Notes: generated from the sequence alone by a model not told the origin. Shown: positions 43,690 to 62,776, counted from the first letter of the whole stretch. The stretch: 63,121 nt of DNA, filler included, from Octopus bimaculoides (GCF_001194135.2; 3 parts of 3 records of this genome joined end to end with filler, not necessarily neighbours in it), one strand, 5' to 3'. Numbers and translations are program-made.

Positions 43690-44115
43690 TGTAGTTAATT
43701 CGACAGGAAAGGTTCAACTTTGGAGAGGGTGGTGTTCTCTAATTCGATAATAGAAACATATCCAAATGCTTACACTTAGTGAAAATTTCTGATCTAGAAT
43801 TCAGTCTGTGTATTTCATAGATATAAATAGATATAAATTCTTTGAGCTATACAAAGCCTTGCACATCCTGAACCCATTAACGTAGAGCGTGGCTCGTTCT
43901 ACGATTATCCACTTTATGGTGTTTAGGATATTTTTGGCCTTCAGGTTCGATAAATGGCAAGCAAACTTAGTGACTTTCTTCTTGTCTACGTTTCGGAAAG
44001 CAGATTGATGGTTAACATATCTATTTTGAAAATCGCTTTTGCAGAGACCAATATACTTTTTCAGTTGAGTCTCGTCAATTTGTAAACCTGAGGTGACTAC
44101 AACTTTGTAGACTAC

Positions 44116-44118
<3 letters not shown>
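43690..44118 (-). mobile_element. Penelope-like (Neptune-type) GIY-YIG relic
   Basis: VVYKVVV..KYIGLCKSDFQNRYVNHQSAF..LKAK..IKWIIVERA. Confidence 0.8.
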
Positions 44119-44147
<29 letters not shown>

Positions 44148-44429
44148 NNNNNNNNNNNNNNNNNNNNNNNNNNNNNNNNNNNNNNNNNNNNNNNNNNNNN
44201 NNNNNNNNNNNNNNNNNNNNNNNNNNNNNNNNNNNNNNNNNNNNNNNNNNNNNNNNNNNNNNNNNNNNNNNNNNNNNNNNNNNNNNNNNNNNNNNNNNNN
44301 NNNNNNNNNNNNNNNNNNNNNNNNNNNNNNNNNNNNNNNNNNNNNNNNNNNNNNNNNNNNNNNNNNNNNNNNNNNNNNNNNNNNNNNNNNNNNNNNNNNN
44401 NNNNNNNNNNNNNNNTATATATATATAGG

Positions 44430-45513: not shown

Positions 45514-45900
45514 GTGGAGGCGCAATGGCCCAGTGGTTAGGGCAGCGGACTCGCGATCATAGGATTGCGGTTTCGATTCCCAGACCGGGCGTTGTGGGTG
45601 TTTATTGATTGAAAACACCTAAAGTTCCACGAGGCTCCAACAGGGGCCGGTGGTGAACCCTGCTGTATTTTTTCACCACCACTTTCTCTCACTCTTACTT
45701 CCTGTTTCTGTTGTACCTGTAATGCAAAAGGTCAACCTTGTCGCACTGTGTCACGCTGAATATCCTCGATAATTACGTTAAGGGTACACATGTCTGTGGA
45801 GTGCTCAGCCACTTGCACGTTAATTTCACGAGCAGGCTGTTTCGTTGATCGAATCAACTGGAACCCGCGATGTCGTAAGCGACTGAGTGCCAACACAAAA
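45514..45900 (+). mobile_element. Full-length tRNA-derived SINE family 3
   Basis: A box TGGCCCAGTGGTTAG, B box GTTTCGATTCCC, ~390-bp body; partial copy at 8858-8955. Confidence 0.85.
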
Positions 45901-46477: not shown

Positions 46478-46483
46478 TTTATT
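46478..46483 (-). terminator. Candidate polyadenylation signal AATAAA of the membrane-protein locus
   Basis: Plus-strand TTTATT, about 45 nt downstream of the terminal TGA (46530-46528). Confidence 0.45.
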
Positions 46484-46527: not shown

Positions 46528-48752
46528 TCATTCTTCAAATACATTTATTGTTTCGACTATTTCATCTAACATGGTTATTGTTAACCTACTATTTGTGTTT
46601 TTTATAGACAATAATTTAGGTATCATAGACGTCATCAACATCAAAGTAATCTTTGTGAATGTTGATAAGCCCAAGTCTTCTAGATTTATTATATTGTTGC
46701 AAGCAAAGAAAAAAAATACGATTAGAAACAGTTTTACAATGGATTTACCAATCTCGAATCTCAATGGAAAATGTTGGTTAACAATTGTCTTGAACAACTT
46801 GGCGTTTATGAATTCCTCCCCATATTTTGACTTTACTAAATTTGGACGAAGAATTTTGGTGAGCTTTATAGATTCAAGCAGAATAAAGTCATACTGTTTC
46901 TGAACAGCTTTTATAATTGCAATACCATAAACAAGAAACATGGAAACGAACCATATATCACCAACGGTACCAGGCTTAGCAAGTACTGCAACAGCTATTG
47001 AAAATATATACTCGCAAAGGATACCAAACGTTACTACAAATATATAGATTGAATACATTCCCCAAATTAGAAAACATGGAAACGATATGAATGTTAAAAT
47101 GAAAGCAATAATCTTGAAAATATAGTTAGGATTCAAATACAGAGGGAAAATATAAACTCTGAAATAACTTAATGGTAAAGTTAAAACCAAATAAAGAATT
47201 GGGATTCCATAATACAAGAGGCACAGAAATAATTCACAGACAGAAAATACGGCAAATAAAATTGTAATGGAAACAAAGGGACAAAGTGTAATGAATCGCC
47301 AGAAAATATTTCTTTCGTAGTAATATAACCAAATTTTCTTTATACGGTTAAACCAAGTATAAATTACTAAATGCCAGAAACTTGGGTTTAAAGCAGTAGA
47401 AATATTAGCTTTCATTATTGCATAGAGTAGATCATAATCCTGTACTGTAGAAACATTTAAACTGCCATACTTCTCTAATAATCTCTTATTTTGAATGAGA
47501 AATGTGCAAGTGGATCATTGATGTAATGTATTATAAGCGATAGTCTCACTTAAACGACTGGGAAGAACGAAGAGAATAAAACTGAAAAATATGTAGCCCA
47601 TGAACCACAAAAATGGACCCCCGAAGAAGCCACCTGTATTGTCATAACTTCGCGAGATTCCTAATATTAGGGCGCGATAGCCCAATGGTATATCATTTTG
47701 GAATAGTATTTTTATTGTTTCATATAAAAAGAAGTAATGCATCAAAAGATCCAGAACAATTACTGAAAGAGAGAATAGAATACACAGGAATCTTCTTAGT
47801 CTTGAGGCAAAGAAAGAGGAATTGTGGAAACAAAATATCCAAGACACAAAATGAGAGAATGTGTAAATATTATGTTTTCCATTGATCCACTCGGATTTGT
47901 ATGGCAACGTGTTTTTAATTGTAAATAAGAATTCATCGTGTGCAAACAGTGGCAGATTGAGTTGACGGGAATGTGAAGGTACTTTAGCTTTTGATACGAA
48001 ACTTATAAACAATGGAGCAAATGCCCACAAAACTGCTCCGATGATATTTGCATAATTGTAAAACATAGCATTTTCAATGGTTTTTCCCGGACAAATGGAT
48101 TTGGTGTGAATAAACATGACTTTCGTTTTTATTGATCACACAGCAATAGTTCTTCACTATCTCTCGATTTATACCTATTCTTCTGTAAGCTTCAAATACG
48201 CGAGGACTTTTCCTCTTCAAATCATAAGACAGATTTATTAAAAAAACACATGGAGCCAGATTTTCCCATTTGCAATTTGGCGATAAATAAGATACTTTTC
48301 AATTCCTGAAAAATTAAATATATTAAATCATTTCTCTGAATATTTTGTTTTCCACAATTTATATCGATATTAATCCTTAGATTAGCAATGTAGACAGCTA
48401 ACATATGAAAAGTGCGAATTTTAAAATCATAGGAAAACTTGTTATATACTACAAAACCATTAGGTACATCTGAAATCCACGTAAAATGTCTCGCGTTTGC
48501 AAAATAATCCAGCGGTACAGGATTAAGAAGGTCATCAAGTGACTTGTTTGATAAATGGACTTCAAAATTGAAAACATCTTTTTCTAATTTTACTAAACGA
48601 GATAAAATCTCACTGACATTGGGAGGAATTTTAATTTCGCAATTATTTCCGCGTTCCTTCGCATCGATGTTTAGTGATGTCAGTGTGATAATAAGAATGA
48701 TTGAAATAATAAGAGAACTGGCTGCTCTTATTATCGTCTGCATGGCAGCCAT
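46528..48752 (-). pseudogene. Disrupted single-coding-exon gene for an uncharacterised ~740-aa signal-peptide, multi-pass membrane protein
   Basis: ORF 48752-48222 (signal peptide, ectodomain) shifts +1 into an open bridging frame (..YDLKRKSPRVFEAYRRIGINREIVKNYCCVINK), then +1 into ORF 48117-47515, then passes an in-frame TGA (47517-47515) straight into ORF 47415-46528. Long, non-repetitive, strongly hydrophobic frames; no TE motifs. Confidence 0.75.
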
Positions 48753-48762
48753 ATTTCGTTAC

Positions 48763-48785
48763 CTGTAAATAAAAAAAAATATAGA
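48763..48785 (-). promoter_or_regulatory. Splice acceptor 10 nt upstream of the ATG (5' UTR intron)
   Basis: Minus strand TATTTTTTTTTATTTACAG|GTAACGAAAT-ATG-GCT; AG at 48764-48763. Confidence 0.7.
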
Positions 48786-50137
48786 ACATATAAAATAAGG
48801 AAGATTCATTTTAATTTTTCTTTAAATTTCGTAACTCTTTTAAAATGGAGATTATTTTTGTAGCTGATCTTTGTCTCGATTTGAACCTTCAGCGCTTTCT
48901 TTTAATTAGGTTTTCTTAAATAGTAAAAAACAACTTTGATGGTGATAACGTTATTAGAAAAGACACTAATTACACTTAACAATACCGAATCAAATTAAGT
49001 GACAGAAATAGTACAAAGGAATCAAAAGTTGTTGATGGCAAACCAATCAATTCTGATTTCGATAATTGAGTATATGTAAATAGAGGAGAGAGCGACAGAC
49101 AGACGTCCCTCAGTCACCATGATGGTCAGTGACAAACAGATAAGAGAGACGAGAACATCACAGTATAATATGAGACTCTTTTGACGACTGGGCGATGTGA
49201 ACGAGCAATTTGCCTCTTTTCTAAAAATTGCAGGGGAAAAATATAAATACACACATATACACATCATATATATATATATATATATATATATTCATATATG
49301 CGAGCTGGCAGAATCGTTAGCACGCCATTTTCATCAGTGTGAAGAATTTTTTAAGGACATAAAAAAAGGTCTAATAAAATAAGGTAAATTAAAATAAGAT
49401 ACAATAAGGGAGAATACAAGTGGGGTAATAGGGAAAATAGGATATTTACAGGCAAGTTGTAAAAGGGAAAATGATAACAGTAATAATAATAATGAGAGAG
49501 ACGATAGGGAAAAAAAAAAGATATATCAATGTGTATGCACGTCTATATGTGCTGTAAACTATAACAAAAATAAGAATGAAAAGCTTGTCCTTTGAATTGC
49601 GCGTATGTATTGTATCCTATTTGTATTAAATCTAATTTTGATTCAACATCTTTTTCTCCTCCATTTTTCTATAATCGTTTATGGTATTTTTGTACCTATA
49701 ACGATATTTTTCAACTGTGAGTATGGAAAACGATTAAATTTTGGAAAAATTAAAAGTAAAGTTTTTTAAAAGAATATTTGCATAGTATTTAAATACAAGG
49801 GGCATCTTCCTTGTTTCTACCTGTCTCTGTCTCTTTTGTTTACTCTTGTAAACCCACAAGAGTTGACTTTTTTCCATATATATATATATNNNNNNNNNNN
49901 NNNNNNNNNNNNNNNNNNNNNNNNNNNNNNNNNNNNNNNNNNNNNNNNNNNNNNNNNNNNNNNNNNNNNNNNNNNNNNNNNNNNNNNNNNNNNNNNNNNN
50001 NNNNNNNNNNNNNNNNNNNNNNNNNNNNNNNNNNNNNNNNNNNNNNNNNNNNNNNNNNNNNNNNNNNNNNNNNNNNNNNNNNNNNNNNNNNNNNNNNNNN
50101 NNNNNNNNNNNNNNNNNNNNNNNNNNNNNNNNNNNNN

Positions 50138-50185
<48 letters not shown>

Positions 50186-50199
50186 TGTATATTTTATAT

Positions 50200-51187
50200 A
50201 TGTTTCAGCCTTAAGACTACGGCCTTACCGGCGCACCGCCAGTGTAATCACCTTTTAATTAGCCAATCCTATATGATTAGCTATTGGTGAAAGAGAGAGT
50301 TTGACACTGCTGCCCTCTTGAGTTTCCTACCTTGATATTGACTACTTGTACTACTTCTGTATCGTCGGCATAGCCAGTAAGTGTGGCTGTCTGTGTAACT
50401 GATGGCATATCTGAAAGAGCCATCATGAGCAGCACGGCCGCAATAAGTTCTATGAGGCACTTCACTGTCTATTACTGTCTCCATGGAGAGGGCTTCTGTA
50501 TTTAGGAAGTCATGCAACCACTTTCGATTTTGCCACATAAGCCGAGTCTCAGTAGATTGTGACATATCATCCCATGATCAGCTTTATCAAAGGCCTTTGC
50601 AAAGTCGAAATATATCACATCTACGTTTGAGCGATTCATTAATTGTCTCAACCCCCAGTCATAGTGCTGTAAGAGCTGTGTAAGGAGCTTCTTACTGAGC
50701 GAAAGCCATGCTGGGTGTCAGGAAGCAAGTGATTATCTTCAAGGAACGTAATTAGTTTATTGCTGACAATGCGCTCCGTTACTTTGCTGACATGGCAGTT
50801 TAGAGAGACAGGTCTATAATTTTTAGCATCTGCTCTACTACCTTCTTTATAGACAGGGCATATTATGCCTTCCTTTAACTTTTTGGGAAGTCTCCCAGTT
50901 GTGAGCAAGCTCTGGAAGAGAATCTGAAGTAGTCTTGCTAGAGCCTCATTACATTTCTTCAGGAGAATTGCTGGGAATCCATTAGGGCCTGTGGCTGAGT
51001 TTGAGCTCATTTCAACAATGGCTGATATTACATCAATTTCCTTTATTTTGATGCTCTCAATAATTACCATTTTGTTGTGTAGAGCTATGGGAGCCCAAAA
51101 ACTCATGACGCATAGCTACTTGCAAGTGTCTTAATGGAGTGGGGAAAAGACTCTTGTATTGCACATTCAGTACTTCACTGATCCTCT
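50200..51187 (-). mobile_element. CR1-type LINE RT relic
   Basis: SATGPNGFPAILLKKC; NYRPVSL..SKVTERIV; TQHGFRS; DVIYFDFAKAFDK; GYADDT. Confidence 0.9.
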
Positions 51188-51333
51188 NNNNNNNNNNNNN
51201 NNNNNNNNNNNNNNNNNNNNNNNNNNNNNNNNNNNNNNNNNNNNNNNNNNNNNNNNNNNNNNNNNNNNNNNNNNNNNNNNNNNNNNNNNNNNNNNNNNNN
51301 NNNNNNNNNNNNNNNNNNNNNNNNNNNNNNNNN

Positions 51334-51366
<33 letters not shown>

Positions 51367-51404
51367 ATAGACACACATATATGTACATACATACACACAC
51401 ATAT

Positions 51405-53160
51405 AAACCAGACCTTAAAGCCTTCTTTATGTTTACCAAGGAGACTGCTTCTGTGCATTGCAAGGTAGAGCCACTCCTCCAAAAAGATGGCTCCCTCACA
51501 GGAAACCCAATGAGGATAAGTGAGACGCTGAATGAACAGTTCAAAAGTGTCTTCACCCCACCCCTACAGCACATGCAAGTTAGCAAACCTGTAGAATTCT
51601 TTACTGCTACAGAAGCTGAACAGGAGGCAGTAACAATTGATTACATCAACATCGAAGAAAAGGATGTAATGCTAGCAATAGATAACATAGACGCAAACTC
51701 AGCTGCTGACCCTGATGGATTCCCAGCAATCCTCCTCAAGTCATGCAAACGAGTCCTTGCAAAACCACGGCAGCCTCTTTTCAGAGCTTCCTTGCAAATA
51801 GTAAGGTCCCGGATAAACGAAAGGAGGGAGTAATATGCCCTATCCATAAAGGAGGAAGAAGATCAGATGCCAAAAATTATAGGTCTATCTCTATGACCTA
51901 TAAGTCAAGGATCGCATTGTCAGGAAGAAACAAATTACGTTCCTTGAAGAGAATGACTTGCTGAATGATACCTCGCATGATTTTCGACCAGGTAGAATCT
52001 GCCCGACACAGCTCTTGCAACACTATGACTGAGCGCTAAAGCAGTCGCTCAACAACTCAAATGTGGGCGTAATATACCTCGACTTCGCAAAAGCCTTTGA
52101 CAAATTTGATCGTGGCATGATTTGTCACAAGCTGCGTAATTTTGGCATAGTCAGCATACTTGGAGAATGGCTTCATGGCTTCTTAAAAGACAGAAGTGGT
52201 GGTCAAAGGGGTTACCTCCGAGGAAACACAAATAATTAACGGTGTTCCACAGGGCACTGTCCTGGGACCACTGCTATTCATAGTGCTCCTCTCTGACATG
52301 CTCTCAGCTGCTCAGCTAGCTTCCCTTGCTAGCTATGCAGACGATACGAAAGTCTTTCAGAGAATAGGACCCTGGAGACGTCATGCATCTACAACGTGAA
52401 TTGAACGCAATATACAGATGGGCTGAGGAAAGTAACATGCAGTTTAATGCTGAAAAATTTCAAGCCCTGCGGTACCAACATTTGAAGCTCAATGAAAAGC
52501 AGATAGGATACACTGGCCCCGGAGGGATTGCAATCCCTGAATCAAAACCAGTGCGCCACCTGGGCATCGACATGGGTATCGATGCATCTTTCCAGGTGCA
52601 TATATTACCAAGTTGGCAATAAAATGCAGACGCTTGACCGGGTAGATCCTTCGAACTTTCAAAACTAGAGATAAGGAAATCATGATGGTCCTCTGGAGGA
52701 CTTTCGTCCTTAGCCATCTGGATTGCTGCTTCCAACAGTGAAAAATTAACGACGGAACTCGAGGCGATCCAGCGAAGCTACACCAAGAAGATCGACACAA
52801 TGCGAAATATCAGCTAGTGGGAAAGAGTTAAGACTCTGCTCACTGGAACAAAGGCGAGAAAGATATGCTGTAATATAATCTGGAAGATCCTAGAAAAGCG
52901 TGTCCCAAATTTTGGCGTTGTCAATTACACAAACAGCCTCTGCATAGTACCAAAACTCCCAACATTGCCATCAGGGTACAGGACCAGATACTGCAACAGC
53001 TTCTACTTGAAAGGTCCACAGCTCTTTAATATCCTCCCATAAAATCTGCCTGGCGTGGATGTAGACTTTTTCAAAACAAAACTAGATCTCCTTTGGTCAA
53101 GAGTTCCGAATGAACCTACTTCGAGACAAGAAACAAAGATGAGGGCAGCAACGTCAACGC
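51405..53160 (+). mobile_element. CR1-type LINE RT to 3' end relic
   Basis: DPDGFPAILLKSC; IYLDFAKAFDK; GVPQGTVLGPLLF; SYADDTK; QFNAEKF; FKTKLD..VPNEP. Confidence 0.9.
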
Positions 53161-53829: not shown

Positions 53830-55430
53830 AGGTGGTGAAGTTTGTATATTAAGGTGTGGTCTGTACTTTTGTATAAACAGGTTTTCCTTGTTTAGGCGTT
53901 CTTGTAAGGAGACTGAATCTTTGCATTGGTATATTGGAAAAATATGGAAATTCGGTGTTTTATTTCTTGCTCATCTGTCAATATGTTCGCTCAGAGCTAT
54001 CTTCCTGCATTGAGGAAAACGAATCTGTTCTTTATGCAGCGTAACTCTGCGTCTCAAAGTAAGGCTCGGTTGGTCCACATAATTGTGGCCACAGCCTGAG
54101 CAGGTTAGAAGATAAATCAGGTTCTGAGAGGCACATGTGAAGTTGGTTTTAATTAGAAATATTTCTTCTTGCTGGAATGTGAATTTCGAGCCTTCAATTA
54201 GGTGTGGGCACGTACCACAATTCGGTCGTCCGCAATGTTTAACTGTTGGTATCGTGTGTTGAGTATAGTTTTTGTATTTAGTAGGAGTCTCTTAAGTGAT
54301 TTGTGTTGTCTTTTGCATTTGAGGAGTTTATGTGTATTTAGGATGTTGTTCATTTTCGGGTCTTGAGTGAACAAAGGGAGATTTTATACAATTGTGTTGT
54401 ATGCTTTATTGTTTTTGGGGTTGTGGGTTGATATGTATGGGAGTGAGGTATGGTGTTATGTTTTGTTGTCCTTAGTATGTTTGTGTCTAATTTTTTGGCA
54501 CGTTTAATTTCATGGTCCATAAGTGCGGGTCGGTATTAACGTTCAATGAGTGTTATTTTGGAGTCTTGTAGGCGAAGTTCCCGACTTGTTGTATCAGATA
54601 CAATTGTACAGATCCTTTTTGCTAGATTGAACGGGATATTTATTTTGGTGTGTTTAGGATGGCATCAACTGAAAAGGAGATACTGTTTTGAGTCTGTTGG
54701 TTTGTAGTAGATGTTAGTTGCAATTTTGTTGTTGGAATTTTTTTATAATCAAAATGTCCAGAAATGGGAGCTGTTCACTGTTCCATTGTAAATTGAATAT
54801 TGGAGTCTATATTGTTCAGTGTAGATTTGAAGTCCAGAAGTTTGTCATAAGTTTCATTCCAGATGACAAAACAATCGTCTAGGTACCTTTTCCAGTTTTC
54901 TCTTATACAGTAGTGGAATGGGGGTCCAAATCTTTGAAGCGAAAGTTCATATAGAGTAGATTCAAAGAAACCTATTATTAGGTTCGCAAGGACAGGCGCT
55001 GCTTTCATTCCCATCGCAATACCGCGTTTTTTTTTTTTTTTGCGGTAGTATGTTACATCGAATAGGAAGTAATTGTTTTGTAGGATGAACTTCAGGGATT
55101 CAATGACAAATGTCTGGTTTATGCGATCCGGGAGAACTTCGGGGTATTTTTCTAACCAGAATTTTATTGCTTCTATTCCGTAGTCATGTGGAATAGAGGT
55201 TGATGACATCGGAGGAGACTAATAGAGCTTCTTCGTTGGTGGTTTTTGGTAGATGCTCTAGCATGTCCAGATCGTTTCTAATGAAACTTTTATTTTATCT
55301 GAGGAAAGGTTTCAATAGTATGTCAAGAAAATTGCTTAGGCGGTGTGTTTCACGGGCCGGGCCAGCAATAATAGGCCTTAATTTTAAGTCTTCTAGTGTT
55401 GGGATATTTATGTATAGACCTGGATTTTAG
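53830..55430 (-). mobile_element. Penelope-like element, RT plus GIY-YIG, decayed
   Basis: RPIIAGP; SIPHDYG; GIAMGMKAAPVLANL; WKRYLDDCF; IQFTME; YYKPTDS.QYL; CGRPNCGTC; LIYLLTCSGC. Confidence 0.9.
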
Positions 55431-56209
55431 TTACAGGCCTGTAAATCAAATCCAGGTTTATACATTAATATCTTTGTCTTTTAAGTTTACTCTGCTTTTT
55501 ATTTCATTTTGTTTTTCTTCATATTAATCATCCTTCCTCACATGTCTTAATAGCATGTACGATAATTAATGAAGCCGCCCAGTCCCTTTATCTGAAAATG
55601 GCGCCATTTCACATCAAAGCCCTTCTATAACTGGGATGTGAGTTTATGTGAGTTTCTTTTTTTTTTCTTCAACTTTATGCATTTTCTAGAGATATTTGAC
55701 AGGTTTGTTGCTCTGTATACTTAACTTCAAAATAGTATTCCCTCTCAACTGGCACCGATAACAAAGAGTTAGTATGTAAGCTATACAATTTGTGTATCTT
55801 AAGAAAGATTCTTCAGACTTGAGAAAACTGCGTTTCACTAAACCTTAAACCAACATGCCGGAAAATTTAAATAGCATGTAACATCTTTATGGAATGATGA
55901 TGATGATGATGATGATGATGAGGAGGAGGAGGAGGAGAAGAAGAAGNNNNNNNNNNNNNNNNNNNNNNNNNNNNNNNNNNNNNNNNNNNNNNNNNNNNNN
56001 NNNNNNNNNNNNNNNNNNNNNNNNNNNNNNNNNNNNNNNNNNNNNNNNNNNNNNNNNNNNNNNNNNNNNNNNNNNNNNNNNNNNNNNNNNNNNNNNNNNN
56101 NNNNNNNNNNNNNNNNNNNNNNNNNNNNNNNNNNNNNNNNNNNNNNNNNNNNNNNNNNNNNNNNNNNNNNNNNNNNNNNNNNNNNNNNNNNNNNNNNNNN
56201 NNNNNNNNN

Positions 56210-56560
56210 AGTTCAAATTCTGCCGAGGTCGACTTGGCCTTTCATCCTTTCGGGGTCAATAAAATAAGTACTAGTTACGCACTGGGGTCGATATAATCGA
56301 CTAAGTCCGTTTGTCTGTCCTTCTTTGTCCCCTCTATGTTTAGCCCCTTGTGGGTAGTAAAGAAATAAGAAACGTTAGCACGCCGGGCGAAATGCTTAGC
56401 GGTATTTCGTCTGTCTTTACATTCTGAGTTCAAATTCCACCGAGATAGACTTTGCCTTTCATCCTTTCGGGGGTCGATAAATTAAGTACCAGTTGCGTAC
56501 TGGGGTTGATCTAATCGACTGGCCCCCTCCCCACAAATTTCGGGCCTTGAGTAGAAAAGA
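56210..56560 (+). mobile_element. Two abutting SINE family 1 copies (long-tail copy joined to the head of a short-tail copy)
   Basis: ..GGGTAGTAAAGAAATAA|GAAACGTTAGCACGCCGGGCG.. junction at about 56367. Confidence 0.9.
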
Positions 56561-56888
56561 ATAAATTATACTGTTTTAACCAGCTTTTAGGAATAAGAAT
56601 GCAGGTGCTTGAAAAGACTGCAGTGAGATCGTTGTGAGACTTTCTTATAGAAATGAAGAATGGAGCAGAACAGGACAGATACTGAACGCATTGTATGTAC
56701 TGTAATGCACGTGACAAAGTCATGTGACCCATGATTGAAAAGAAAGGCAAAAATAAATTTAAAAAATAACAGTCGAATGGATAAGTGTGATAACAAACTA
56801 TGAAAATGAGTTATTTTAACCTGGGAATAGAAAATTACTATTTGTAAATCTCACAACGAGAGATATTCGGCAACAGTACTTTGTAGTA

Positions 56889-58869: not shown

Positions 58870-59090
58870 TTGAGTGGACAAACGAACGAAAAGGGCTTTC
58901 AACACATTCAGTAAGAGTTACATATATTATTTGAAAAACATTTATTCAATTCTATGTCACTTAAAATTTCGTAGGCCTCTAACAGAAACCCGTCTCTTTC
59001 ATACTTTCCATTGCCAAATAGATAAATGCAAGAAATGGAAGGTGGCTACCGGAATATAATAGGAATTACATGTATTATTTAAAACATCGA

Positions 59091-59310
59091 AGGCGGTGAG
59101 CTAGCAGAATCGTTAGCACAACGGACGAAATGCTTAGCGGTATTTCGCCAGTCGTTACGTTCTGCGTTCAAATTCCACCGAGGTAGACCTTGCCTTTCAT
59201 CCTTTCCGGATCCATAAATTAAGTACCAGTGAAACACTGGGACCGATGTAATCGAGTAGTCCTCTCCCCCATAATTTCAAGCCTTGTGCCTATAGTAGAG
59301 AGGATTATTT
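59091..59310 (+). mobile_element. SINE family 1, full-length short-tail form
   Basis: Head GGCGGTGAGCTAGCAGAATCGTTAGCA through tail GCCTTGTGCCTATAGTAGAGAGG. Confidence 0.9.
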
Positions 59311-59734
59311 AAACATCTGATGATATTTTTTCTTTTTTCTTTGTTTTCCTCAGACGAGTAACGCCCAAACTCTAAGGGAACATTAGACTGGCAAAAGCAC
59401 AAATGTAACACCTGAAGAAGCATACACATTGTGATGGAGGAAAACTGAGTTTTATAGATATGAATAATCTTAAATAATATCTTATGTATGTGAAAAACTT
59501 CTAATGGGATGCAGAAACGTCTAATGTGGGATGCAGAAACACATGTCGGGATACATTAATAAAGCCTATAAATTTCCATCCACAAGTTATTCTTGTTATT
59601 AATATATTTATCCTAAACTGAAAGAACTTTCTCCTTTATAACCATTCCATGAGATTACACATCAAGATGGGACCGACAGGCGATAGAAGACAACGAGAGA
59701 CATAGAAGCTTTTAACATTGCAACCTGAGGCATT

Positions 59735-60147
59735 CACCGAAAATATATTAAACAGATATATATGTCTGGTCTCTGAGCATCGATTAGAGAGTCACGTTGG
59801 ATTGTAATATCCTTCAGGATATTATATTCATTGTCATCAGTGATGCGCTCTCGTTCATGATCGCACCATTCCCGCACTCTGTCCAGACCGTATTTTTCAC
59901 ACAGTCTCCAGTGAATAAATTTACCCATGTTATTGCGTCTCCTTTTGCTCTGCTTTTCGGCTAGCTTACTACACTCACTCATAATATGTGAGATTGTTCC
60001 GCTTTTGGTGCCGCACATCATACAAAGAGGCGATTCCCTGCTCCTATATATTTGGAACTTGGTGTAATTAGTTCTCAGAGCTTGTTCTTGGGCGTTGAAT
60101 ATCAATGCCTCATTGCAGCCTTTCAGATCACTTTTTCTTAGCCATCT
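59735..60147 (-). mobile_element. R4/Dong-clade fragment (CCHC to RLE start)
   Basis: AQEQALRTNY..CMMCG..TISHIMSEC..IHWRLC..RPDI. Confidence 0.85.
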
Positions 60148-60266
60148 CCAGGTGCTGGGTTCAGTTCCACTGCTTGGCACCTTGGGCAAATGTCTTCTAC
60201 TATAGCCTCGGGCCGACCAAAGCCTTGTGAGTGGATTTGGTAGACGGAAACTGAAAGAAGCCCGTC

Positions 60267-60314
<48 letters not shown>

Positions 60315-60525
60315 GTTTGTGTGTCTGTGTTTGTACCTACAACATCATTTGACAACTAATGATGGTATGTTTACGTCCCCGTAACTTAGCGGTTCGGCAA
60401 GAGAGACCGATAGAATAAGTACTAGGCTTCTAAAGAATAAGTCCTGGGGCCGATTTGCTCGACTAAAGGCGGTGCTCCAGCATGGCCGCCGTCAAATGAC
60501 TGAAACAAATAAAAGAATAAAAGAA
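60148..60525 (+). mobile_element. SINE family 2 showing both halves joined by an internal (TA)n
   Basis: CORE-like half, then (TA)n, then GTTTACGTCCCCGTAACTTAGCGG..GGCGGTGCTCCAGCATGGCCG tail. Confidence 0.9.
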
Positions 60526-62205: not shown

Positions 62206-62547
62206 TAGGATGTTTATTTTCCAACAGGCTAATCTGCTGGCAAATCCAGATGGATCTCGCGACCGAAAATATATCCCTATGACCGGAAGCCGAATACACT
62301 AACCACTAAGCCGAGCGCTTTCACACACACACACATACGCACATACACACAGACACGCACACGCGTGCGCACACTCACACACACACACAAGCACACACAC
62401 AAGCACACACACAAGCATAGTTTCGTAGATAATATTAATGTTAATATTGTGTACAAATATATGCGTGCGTGTATGTATATATATGTGTGTGTGTATGTGT
62501 GTGTACATATATGTCACACACACGCACACTCATACGCACGCACACAC

Positions 62548-62776
62548 GGCGAGCTGGCAGAAACGTTAGCACGCCGGGAGAAATGCTTAGCGGTATTTCG
62601 TCTACCGCTACGTTCTGAGTTCAAATTCCGCCGAGGTCGACTCTGCCTTTCATCCTTTCGGGGTCGATTAAATAAGTACCAGTTACGCACTGGGGTCGGT
62701 ATAATCGACTTAATCCATTTGTCTGTCCTTGTTTGTCCCCTCTGTGTGTAGCCCCTTGTGGGTAGTAAAGAAATAA
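62548..62776 (+). mobile_element. Young full-length SINE family 1 (long-tail form) inserted in a (CA)n tract
   Basis: Near-consensus copy; reverse complement matches 10624-10845. Confidence 0.95.

Follow-up and report, generated by a model that had tools for sequence, protein, structure and literature searches.

What gene lies behind three adjacent minus-strand open reading frames (ORFs) in the genome of Octopus bimaculoides, and could it still make its protein? The ORFs span positions 46,528 to 48,752 of a 63,121-nt window, by which we mean the whole stretch of DNA that was analysed (three parts of assembly GCF_001194135.2 joined end to end with filler). We find that they are the remains of one gene, a recently inactivated, DNA-duplicated paralogue in an orphan spiralian family of nine-transmembrane (nine-TM) glycoproteins that undergoes birth-and-death turnover in octopods. 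We give this explanation as a whole a probability of roughly 80%. Its mechanistic part, that the intact proteins sense ligands at the cell surface, is more tentative, and we put it somewhat below even odds.

An ORF listing and a three-frame translation place the ORFs at 48752-48222, 48117-47515 and 47415-46528, and between the first two lies a 43-codon third-frame stretch, containing 'NYCC', that is part of the same gene. When the intact O. sinensis protein LOC118765918 (P0001, 740 amino acids (aa)) was used as a tblastn query, its residues 1-171, 170-223 and 208-740 aligned in three different frames; no second copy of the gene was found with this query in the 20-kb piece searched. We mapped the lesions by global alignment to the intact coding sequence (CDS) of P0001 (L001:10001-12223, 2223 nt), against which the window carries just two surplus bases, one near 48239 (codon ~172) and the other near 48110 (codon ~214). 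Once these two bases are removed, a 2223-nt frame with 87.4% DNA identity to the P0001 CDS is recovered. What we see is thus a single 740-codon gene on the minus strand, 48752..46528, split by two +1 insertions and one nonsense codon. In both insertions the extra base is an A (or T) beside one like base; the first comes immediately after a run of seven T, and neither lies inside a long homopolymer run. The parts of the gene are listed below, with their evidence in brackets; the structural entries draw on an AlphaFold2 (AF2) model and its predicted local distance difference test (pLDDT) scores.

46528..48752, minus strand: the whole pseudogene, a 740-codon coding region with its ATG at 48752-48750 and its TGA stop at 46530-46528 (tblastn, CDS alignment, phmmer).
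48763..48790, minus strand: 3' splice acceptor, a polypyrimidine tract and CAG (48765-48763), 10 nt before the ATG (shared with four O. sinensis paralogues).
48660..48752, minus strand: signal peptide, about residues 1-31 (hydrophobic segment 9-27; AF2 helix 6-31, with the first strand at residue 38).
48072..48659, minus strand: alpha/beta ectodomain, corresponding to about residues 32-227 of the intact relative, in which six Cys are conserved (AF2 pLDDT ~90 for elements 38-225; Cys conservation).
48239, minus strand: frameshift 1, one extra base, TTTA-A-TAAAT against TTTATAAAT, codon ~172 (CDS alignment; tblastn frame -3 to -1 at 48240-48244).
48110, minus strand: frameshift 2, one extra base, codon ~214 (CDS alignment; tblastn frame -1 to -2 at 48083-48129).
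47515..47517, minus strand: premature stop TGA, codon 412 (relatives carry Arg: AGA, Arg412, in P0001; consensus 'HQRST').
46531..48071, minus strand: membrane core, nine TM helices and cytoplasmic helical segments, residues about 228-740 (AF2 helices, hydropathy, charge and sequon distribution).
46478..46483, minus strand: AATAAA, a candidate polyadenylation signal 45 nt past the stop (direct reading of the sequence).

Both frameshifts fall within the ectodomain. The AATAAA is not kept among paralogues, whose 3' flanks diverge right after the stop codon. A phmmer search with the conceptual product reaches octopod proteins at E = 0, with 65-79% identity over 96-100% of the product's length, which excludes chance. 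With two +1 insertions and one TGA, the window copy has no open frame for the full protein: the locus is a pseudogene member of its family, non-functional as a coding gene, and it yields no functional protein itself.

How this copy arose can be read from its 5' end. In each of four O. sinensis paralogues the coding region is one uninterrupted exon of 2196-2223 nt, and the window shares with all four an acceptor of the form TTTACAG followed by rTAACsAAAT ATGGCTGCC, the CAG standing 10 nt before ATGGCTGCC. Such a conserved acceptor before the ATG means that the coding region is a single terminal exon behind an intron in the 5' untranslated region (UTR); any 5'UTR exons would lie upstream, and none was located in the window. 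Because the copies retain the end of this intron, duplication went through DNA and not through retroposition, and an origin as a retrocopy was rejected on this ground. Between paralogous loci, homology reaches only some 55-105 nt beyond the ATG on the 5' side and does not extend past the stop codon on the 3' side. The window copy shares no flanking homology with any of the four O. sinensis loci examined, and it is therefore a separate paralogue and none of those four. Judged from its sequence, the locus reads as a unitary pseudogene produced by DNA-level duplication. We also observed a short match of 78% identity between window 45719-45882 and L001 14600-14765, on the collinear side relative to the P0001 locus, which could be a remnant of a shared flank or a mere repeat.

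The loss of function is recent. Nei-Gojobori ratios of nonsynonymous to synonymous divergence (dN/dS) lie between 0.39 and 0.52 for every pair drawn from the four O. sinensis paralogues and the pseudogene, and a value of about 0.45 is high for a membrane protein, yet indicates purifying selection. The ratios of the pseudogene are no different from those of intact pairs. It keeps 84 of 86 cephalopod-invariant residues, the exceptions being Y167S and D373G, as well as 23 of the 24 family-wide columns conserved at 90% or more, and its dS to the nearest paralogue is 0.22. The retained invariant residues and the unchanged dN/dS together imply that inactivation was recent relative to the divergence from that paralogue. 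Much of this had been anticipated by the initial annotation, which was made from the sequence alone: it had joined the three ORFs into one frame of about 740 codons ('2225 nt minus 2', a count that proves exact against the intact CDS), had pointed to an acceptor before the ATG and an AATAAA after the stop, and had described a single-coding-exon gene in recent decay.

The conceptual product retrieved 21 proteins, the named ones all from octopods (O. sinensis, O. bimaculoides, O. vulgaris and Argonauta hians); two European Nucleotide Archive (ENA) proteins among the 21 match at about 34% identity. They include LOC118765918 (P0001), LOC115211026 (P0002), LOC115232508 and LOC115209402 of O. sinensis, LOC106875165, LOC106877666 and LOC106877664 of O. 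bimaculoides, a hypothetical protein of O. vulgaris (P0004) and a homologue in A. hians (P0013). The closest intact relatives are 77-79% identical in protein, and the intact octopod proteins are 731-747 aa long (family members elsewhere, about 750-860 aa) and encoded by intronless genes. At least nine loci are present in O. sinensis, and seven of them form a loose cluster on chromosome CM016859.1, where the intact copies lie at 205.04, 205.13, 205.34 and 208.61 Mb, three of them within about 300 kb. Other O. sinensis gene models are short: several have 501-602 aa (602, 569 and 512 aa among them), and two more cover less than half of the query. A partial second copy, 75% identical to window 46742-47726, is found on the same chromosome at L002 21071-22001, some 9 kb downstream of LOC115211026, and points to tandem duplication followed by decay. 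Tandem and truncated copies of this kind fit birth-and-death evolution in octopods. Two side observations concern individual copies: the 5' end of the partial copy is apparently cut off by an interspersed repeat, and P0021 of O. vulgaris (1010 aa, 'cytoplasmic-like'), in which about 270 aa of the orphan family are joined to gelsolin-type domains (PF00626 and others), is probably a prediction mis-merged with a neighbouring gene.

The family itself reaches well beyond octopods. An exhaustive hidden Markov model (HMM) search with an octopod profile recovered 151 representatives of 50% identity clusters at E ≤ 1e-3, 60 of them at E ≤ 1e-30. Besides cephalopods, the named sources are bivalves (Ostrea, Mercenaria, Mytilus, Mya, Mizuhopecten and the unionids Potamilus and Sinanodonta), the gastropod Haliotis, the annelid Owenia and the nemertean Tubulanus, so that all of them are molluscs, an annelid or a nemertean; each named member is annotated as 'uncharacterized' or 'hypothetical'. 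When the 98-sequence profile was used in a word-indexed search, nothing but the octopod proteins already known came back, and the family was not widened; literature searches covering the LOC identifiers, STRA6 in octopus, STRA6-like proteins in invertebrates and intronless or tandem transmembrane genes in octopus yielded nothing on this family. Pro, Gly, Cys and aromatic residues predominate at the near-invariant positions: C38, C133, C169, C203(/C204), W92, P246, R317(/R320), G377-G378-P379, P397, F458-W459, R469, E506, P517, P593, Y608, Y620, P662 and P711. Within the ectodomain the conserved cysteines are C38, C133, C169, C203, C204 and C220. Family-wide motifs are SRxxR, GxPxGF, GGP, NPxFW, E..LC..YYGxP, GIPxxLFxxIVxxxxPxR and LPK, and the most conserved segment of the protein is the extracellular loop between TM2 and TM3 (GxPxGF...GGP).

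For the architecture of the intact proteins we turned to an AF2 model of P0001 built on a 98-sequence alignment (A2), which has a mean pLDDT of 87.2 and a predicted template modelling (pTM) score of 0.83; the model from a 12-sequence octopod alignment was too poor to use (pLDDT 46). After the signal helix (6-31) and the alpha/beta ectodomain (38-225) come TM helices at 228-253, 313-351, 379-395, 482-515, 517-539, 543-591, 593-634, 663-690 and 697-718, some of them long and tilted (42-49 residues), together with cytoplasmic helical segments at 400-478 and a beta-hairpin and helix at 639-660. Over the 98 family members, an ectodomain has on average 6.8 Cys and 4.2 sequons (N-x-S/T), with sequons roughly three times as dense as in the other loops, and loop 3-4 (segment 396-481) has a net charge of +5.4 across the family. 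The enrichment of Cys and sequons in the ectodomain and the charge of this loop support a nine-TM topology with the N-terminus outside and the C-terminus inside (N-out, C-in). Intact members are thus predicted, on the model, to have a cleavable signal peptide, a glycosylated and disulfide-bonded ectodomain of about 195 aa, and nine TM helices in N-out/C-in orientation.

Comparison with known families returned no counterpart. Pfam gave nothing for the window pieces and 9 octopod homologues (E ≤ 1) or for 10 distant homologues, and nothing consistent in 58 family members (E ≤ 10). Two family profiles (A1 and A2), run against all PDB chain sequences, produced only noise (E ≥ 0.4). A Foldseek comparison of the AF2 model found no match at E ≤ 0.001 in PDB or BFVD, the best E-values being 0.78 and 2.0, respectively, and all PDB TM-scores 0.18 or less; its top PDB rows (TRP and Nav channels and ABC exporters, E 0.8-9) were treated as noise from long helical bundles. 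A G-protein-coupled receptor (GPCR, 7TM) was rejected, as there is no 7tm Pfam match and the model has nine TM helices; the sole GPCR among the Foldseek rows is an adrenomedullin 2 receptor complex at E = 7.9. A Cys-loop (nicotinic-like) chemotactile receptor was likewise rejected, given no Neur_chan Pfam match and an alpha/beta ectodomain followed by nine TM helices. The family appears to be one of orphan spiralian nine-TM ectodomain proteins (octopod LOC118765918-like), outside every characterised family that could be tested here.

Here, too, the initial annotation agrees with the analysis on many points. The signal peptide, Cys-bearing ectodomain and multi-pass core that it described agree with AF2 and hydropathy, its estimate of 8-10 hydrophobic helices settling at nine, and the motifs it picked out (SRLRRF, IPLGY, FGGP, YGIP, LF..IV..HFPLR and TSMIPKL) are all present at family-conserved positions. 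Its impression that this was neither a GPCR, nor a Cys-loop receptor, nor a transporter that it could name accords with the Pfam results; its suggestion of an uncharacterised invertebrate family fits the labels of all named relatives, and its birth-and-death proposal agrees with the number, clustering and truncation of the O. sinensis loci and with the partial copy beside P0002. The AlphaFold monomer and Foldseek comparison that it suggested gave a confident model and no significant PDB or BFVD match. Its interpretation is thus supported in part, for the further reading as a receptor or channel of sensory or immune type is more tentative and draws on architecture and evolutionary pattern. No confident match to a characterised family or to a transposable element (TE) protein was found, and intact cephalopod homologues exist.

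What might intact members do? We propose, tentatively, that they are cell-surface proteins that sense ligands, either as receptors or as receptor-gated pores. The proposal follows from a secreted-type ectodomain, a conserved site on the outer face of the membrane core, intronless tandem arrays and elevated dN/dS. In outline, the ectodomain would be positioned over this outer-face site, which, as placed by the predicted topology, would be made up of the TM2-TM3 loop, the TM4-TM5 hairpin and the TM6-TM7 turn (Pro593); in the hairpin, a near-invariant and presumably membrane-embedded Glu506 would be followed by YYGxP. By analogy, intronless exons, tandem clusters, truncated and dead copies and a dN/dS of about 0.45 are closer to what is seen in lineage-specific families of chemoreceptors or immune receptors than to housekeeping transporters. 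Several points weigh against this picture, or against our explanation more broadly. No catalytic or pore signature was recognised, and the mechanism would follow from architecture and evolutionary pattern, no structural analogue having been found. The dN/dS of the ectodomain (0.25-0.45) is not above that of the membrane core (0.36-0.53), so that a model of ligand diversification receives no positive support from it. Foldseek is relatively insensitive for all-helical membrane bundles, and a remote relative among unsolved families may have escaped the searches made here. Finally, a single assembly underlies the pseudogene call, which leaves some room for indel errors or for a null allele that segregates in the population.

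This last point leads us to the alternative that the gene is intact, its lesions reflecting either mistakes of assembly or consensus or a null allele in the heterozygous state, with adenosine-to-inosine (A-to-I) editing able to recode the UGA to UGG. The near-complete set of invariant residues, a dN/dS as in intact paralogues and the intact splice acceptor and ATG are all as one would expect of a working gene. The lesions, however, number three and are independent of one another, both indels sit outside long homopolymer runs, the +1 shifts add up to +2 without restoring the frame, and frameshifts are beyond repair by RNA editing; moreover, relatives carry Arg, not Trp, at the stop position. 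We consider an intact gene improbable. A different origin, in which the ORF was carried by or derived from a TE or virus, could appeal to the multi-copy nature of the family and to the decayed retroelement fragments and interspersed repeats that fill the surrounding DNA. It is effectively refuted: no terminal inverted or direct repeats were found around the gene, homology between paralogous loci is confined to the coding region and the intron end, neither a TE or viral Pfam domain nor a BFVD fold match was obtained, and a signal peptide with a nine-TM glycoprotein architecture kept across phyla is not TE-like.

The remaining alternatives concern the function of the family and leave the window copy as dead as before. 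Intact members may be transporters, scramblase-like lipid handlers or membrane-embedded enzymes (e.g., acyl- or glycosyl-transferases with a lumenal domain), as nine TM helices with long, tilted members of 42-49 residues, a conserved membrane-embedded Glu, retention across three phyla and an ectodomain free of excess divergence could all suggest; but the conserved residues show no His/Asp/Ser catalytic constellation, neither an internal repeat nor a match to a transporter fold was seen, and a dN/dS of about 0.45 combined with tandem expansion and frequent decay would be unusual for core transporters or enzymes. We think this unlikely, though it is the strongest of the competing views. A much weaker candidate is suggested by UniRef itself, which gives the name 'Receptor for retinol uptake STRA6' to P0003 and P0006 of O. 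bimaculoides (e.g., A0A0L8GRC4): the family might be a very distant branch of STRA6/RBPR2, the retinol-binding-protein receptor and retinol transporter, and carry a lipophilic ligand handed over by a carrier protein. STRA6 (PDB 5SY1), a nine-TM protein of N-out, C-in topology, does have a TM count similar to that predicted here. For the comparison we used a human STRA6 sequence, confirmed against 5SY1 (E = 2.6e-169), and a 16-sequence STRA6 alignment built from it. The STRA6 domain PF14752 was found on 120 of the 120 listed true STRA6 proteins, but on none of 21 octopod proteins and none of 58 family members (E ≤ 10). Aligned by hhalign, the 98-sequence family profile reached a probability of 0.49% against the STRA6 alignment and 0.16% against human STRA6 alone; 5SY1 was not found by a family-profile hmmsearch of PDB (E ≤ 10) and was absent from the 51 Foldseek matches at E ≤ 10, and STRA6 does not have a signal peptide followed by a 195-aa ectodomain. 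A STRA6 branch is accordingly very improbable. Since only two of six O. bimaculoides paralogues bear the name, a marginal automatic assignment is suggested, and the name is probably an annotation error that could propagate.

As for the surroundings of the pseudogene, four ORF fragments resembling reverse transcriptase (RT) were noted at 50648-51106 (minus), 51159-51833 (plus), 54775-55209 (minus) and 59734-60189 (minus), with two sub-threshold RVT_1 matches (E 1e-4 and 3e-4). By their sequence they look like decayed remnants of retrotransposons without long terminal repeats (non-LTR) around the pseudogene. An interspersed repeat of about 150-370 nt occurs at 56210-56563, 59090-59311 and 62547-62776, and also at 60151-60525; numerous further copies with 74-92% identity lie in each of the four O. 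sinensis loci (L001-L004), and it looks like an octopod repeat of the short interspersed element (SINE) type, unlinked to the gene. Runs of N lie inside TA/ATAC-type microsatellites (44100-44420, 49800-50140, 51200-51400 and 55900-56200); they mark simple repeats that were masked or left unresolved, and any ORF running across them is an artefact. An Rfam scan of the piece found nothing.

By itself, a dead locus is a modest finding. Its importance is that it points to an overlooked family that is present in at least three spiralian phyla, occurs in multiple copies in many species and has no Pfam model. If the proteins are receptors or channels, the lineage-specific toolkits of molluscs and cephalopods would gain a new class of membrane protein besides the chemotactile receptors. 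The boldest version of this idea, a new Spiralia-restricted class of metazoan cell-surface receptor or receptor-channel with a fold unlike solved structures and an octopod tandem expansion in the sensory or immune repertoire, we regard as doubtful. Should transport or catalysis turn out to be their role, both fold and function would still be without a characterised example. In either case, the octopus 'STRA6' labels should not serve as evidence of cephalopod retinoid-uptake machinery.

Set beside known systems, the window copy is closest to the octopod 'uncharacterized protein' paralogues, with which it shares full-length collinear homology at 65-79% protein identity, the single coding exon, the acceptor, the Cys pattern and the motifs, and from whose intact members it differs in its two frameshifts and stop, the flanks of the four O. 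sinensis loci also being unrelated. Homologues in other spiralians have the same overall architecture and near-invariant residues as the octopod proteins, but are only 15-23% identical to them, are longer (about 750-880 aa) and in some cases have N-terminal extensions without recognisable domains. STRA6 stands apart in showing no Pfam, HMM, profile-profile or fold similarity to the family and in having neither a cleavable signal peptide nor a large Cys-rich ectodomain. Finally, the intronless tandem chemoreceptor families, such as vertebrate odorant receptors and the GPCR expansions of cephalopods, are alike in genomic behaviour only, that is, in a single coding exon, clustering, pseudogenes and truncated copies, and elevated dN/dS; in place of any 7TM Pfam match, the orphan family has nine TM helices and an ectodomain.

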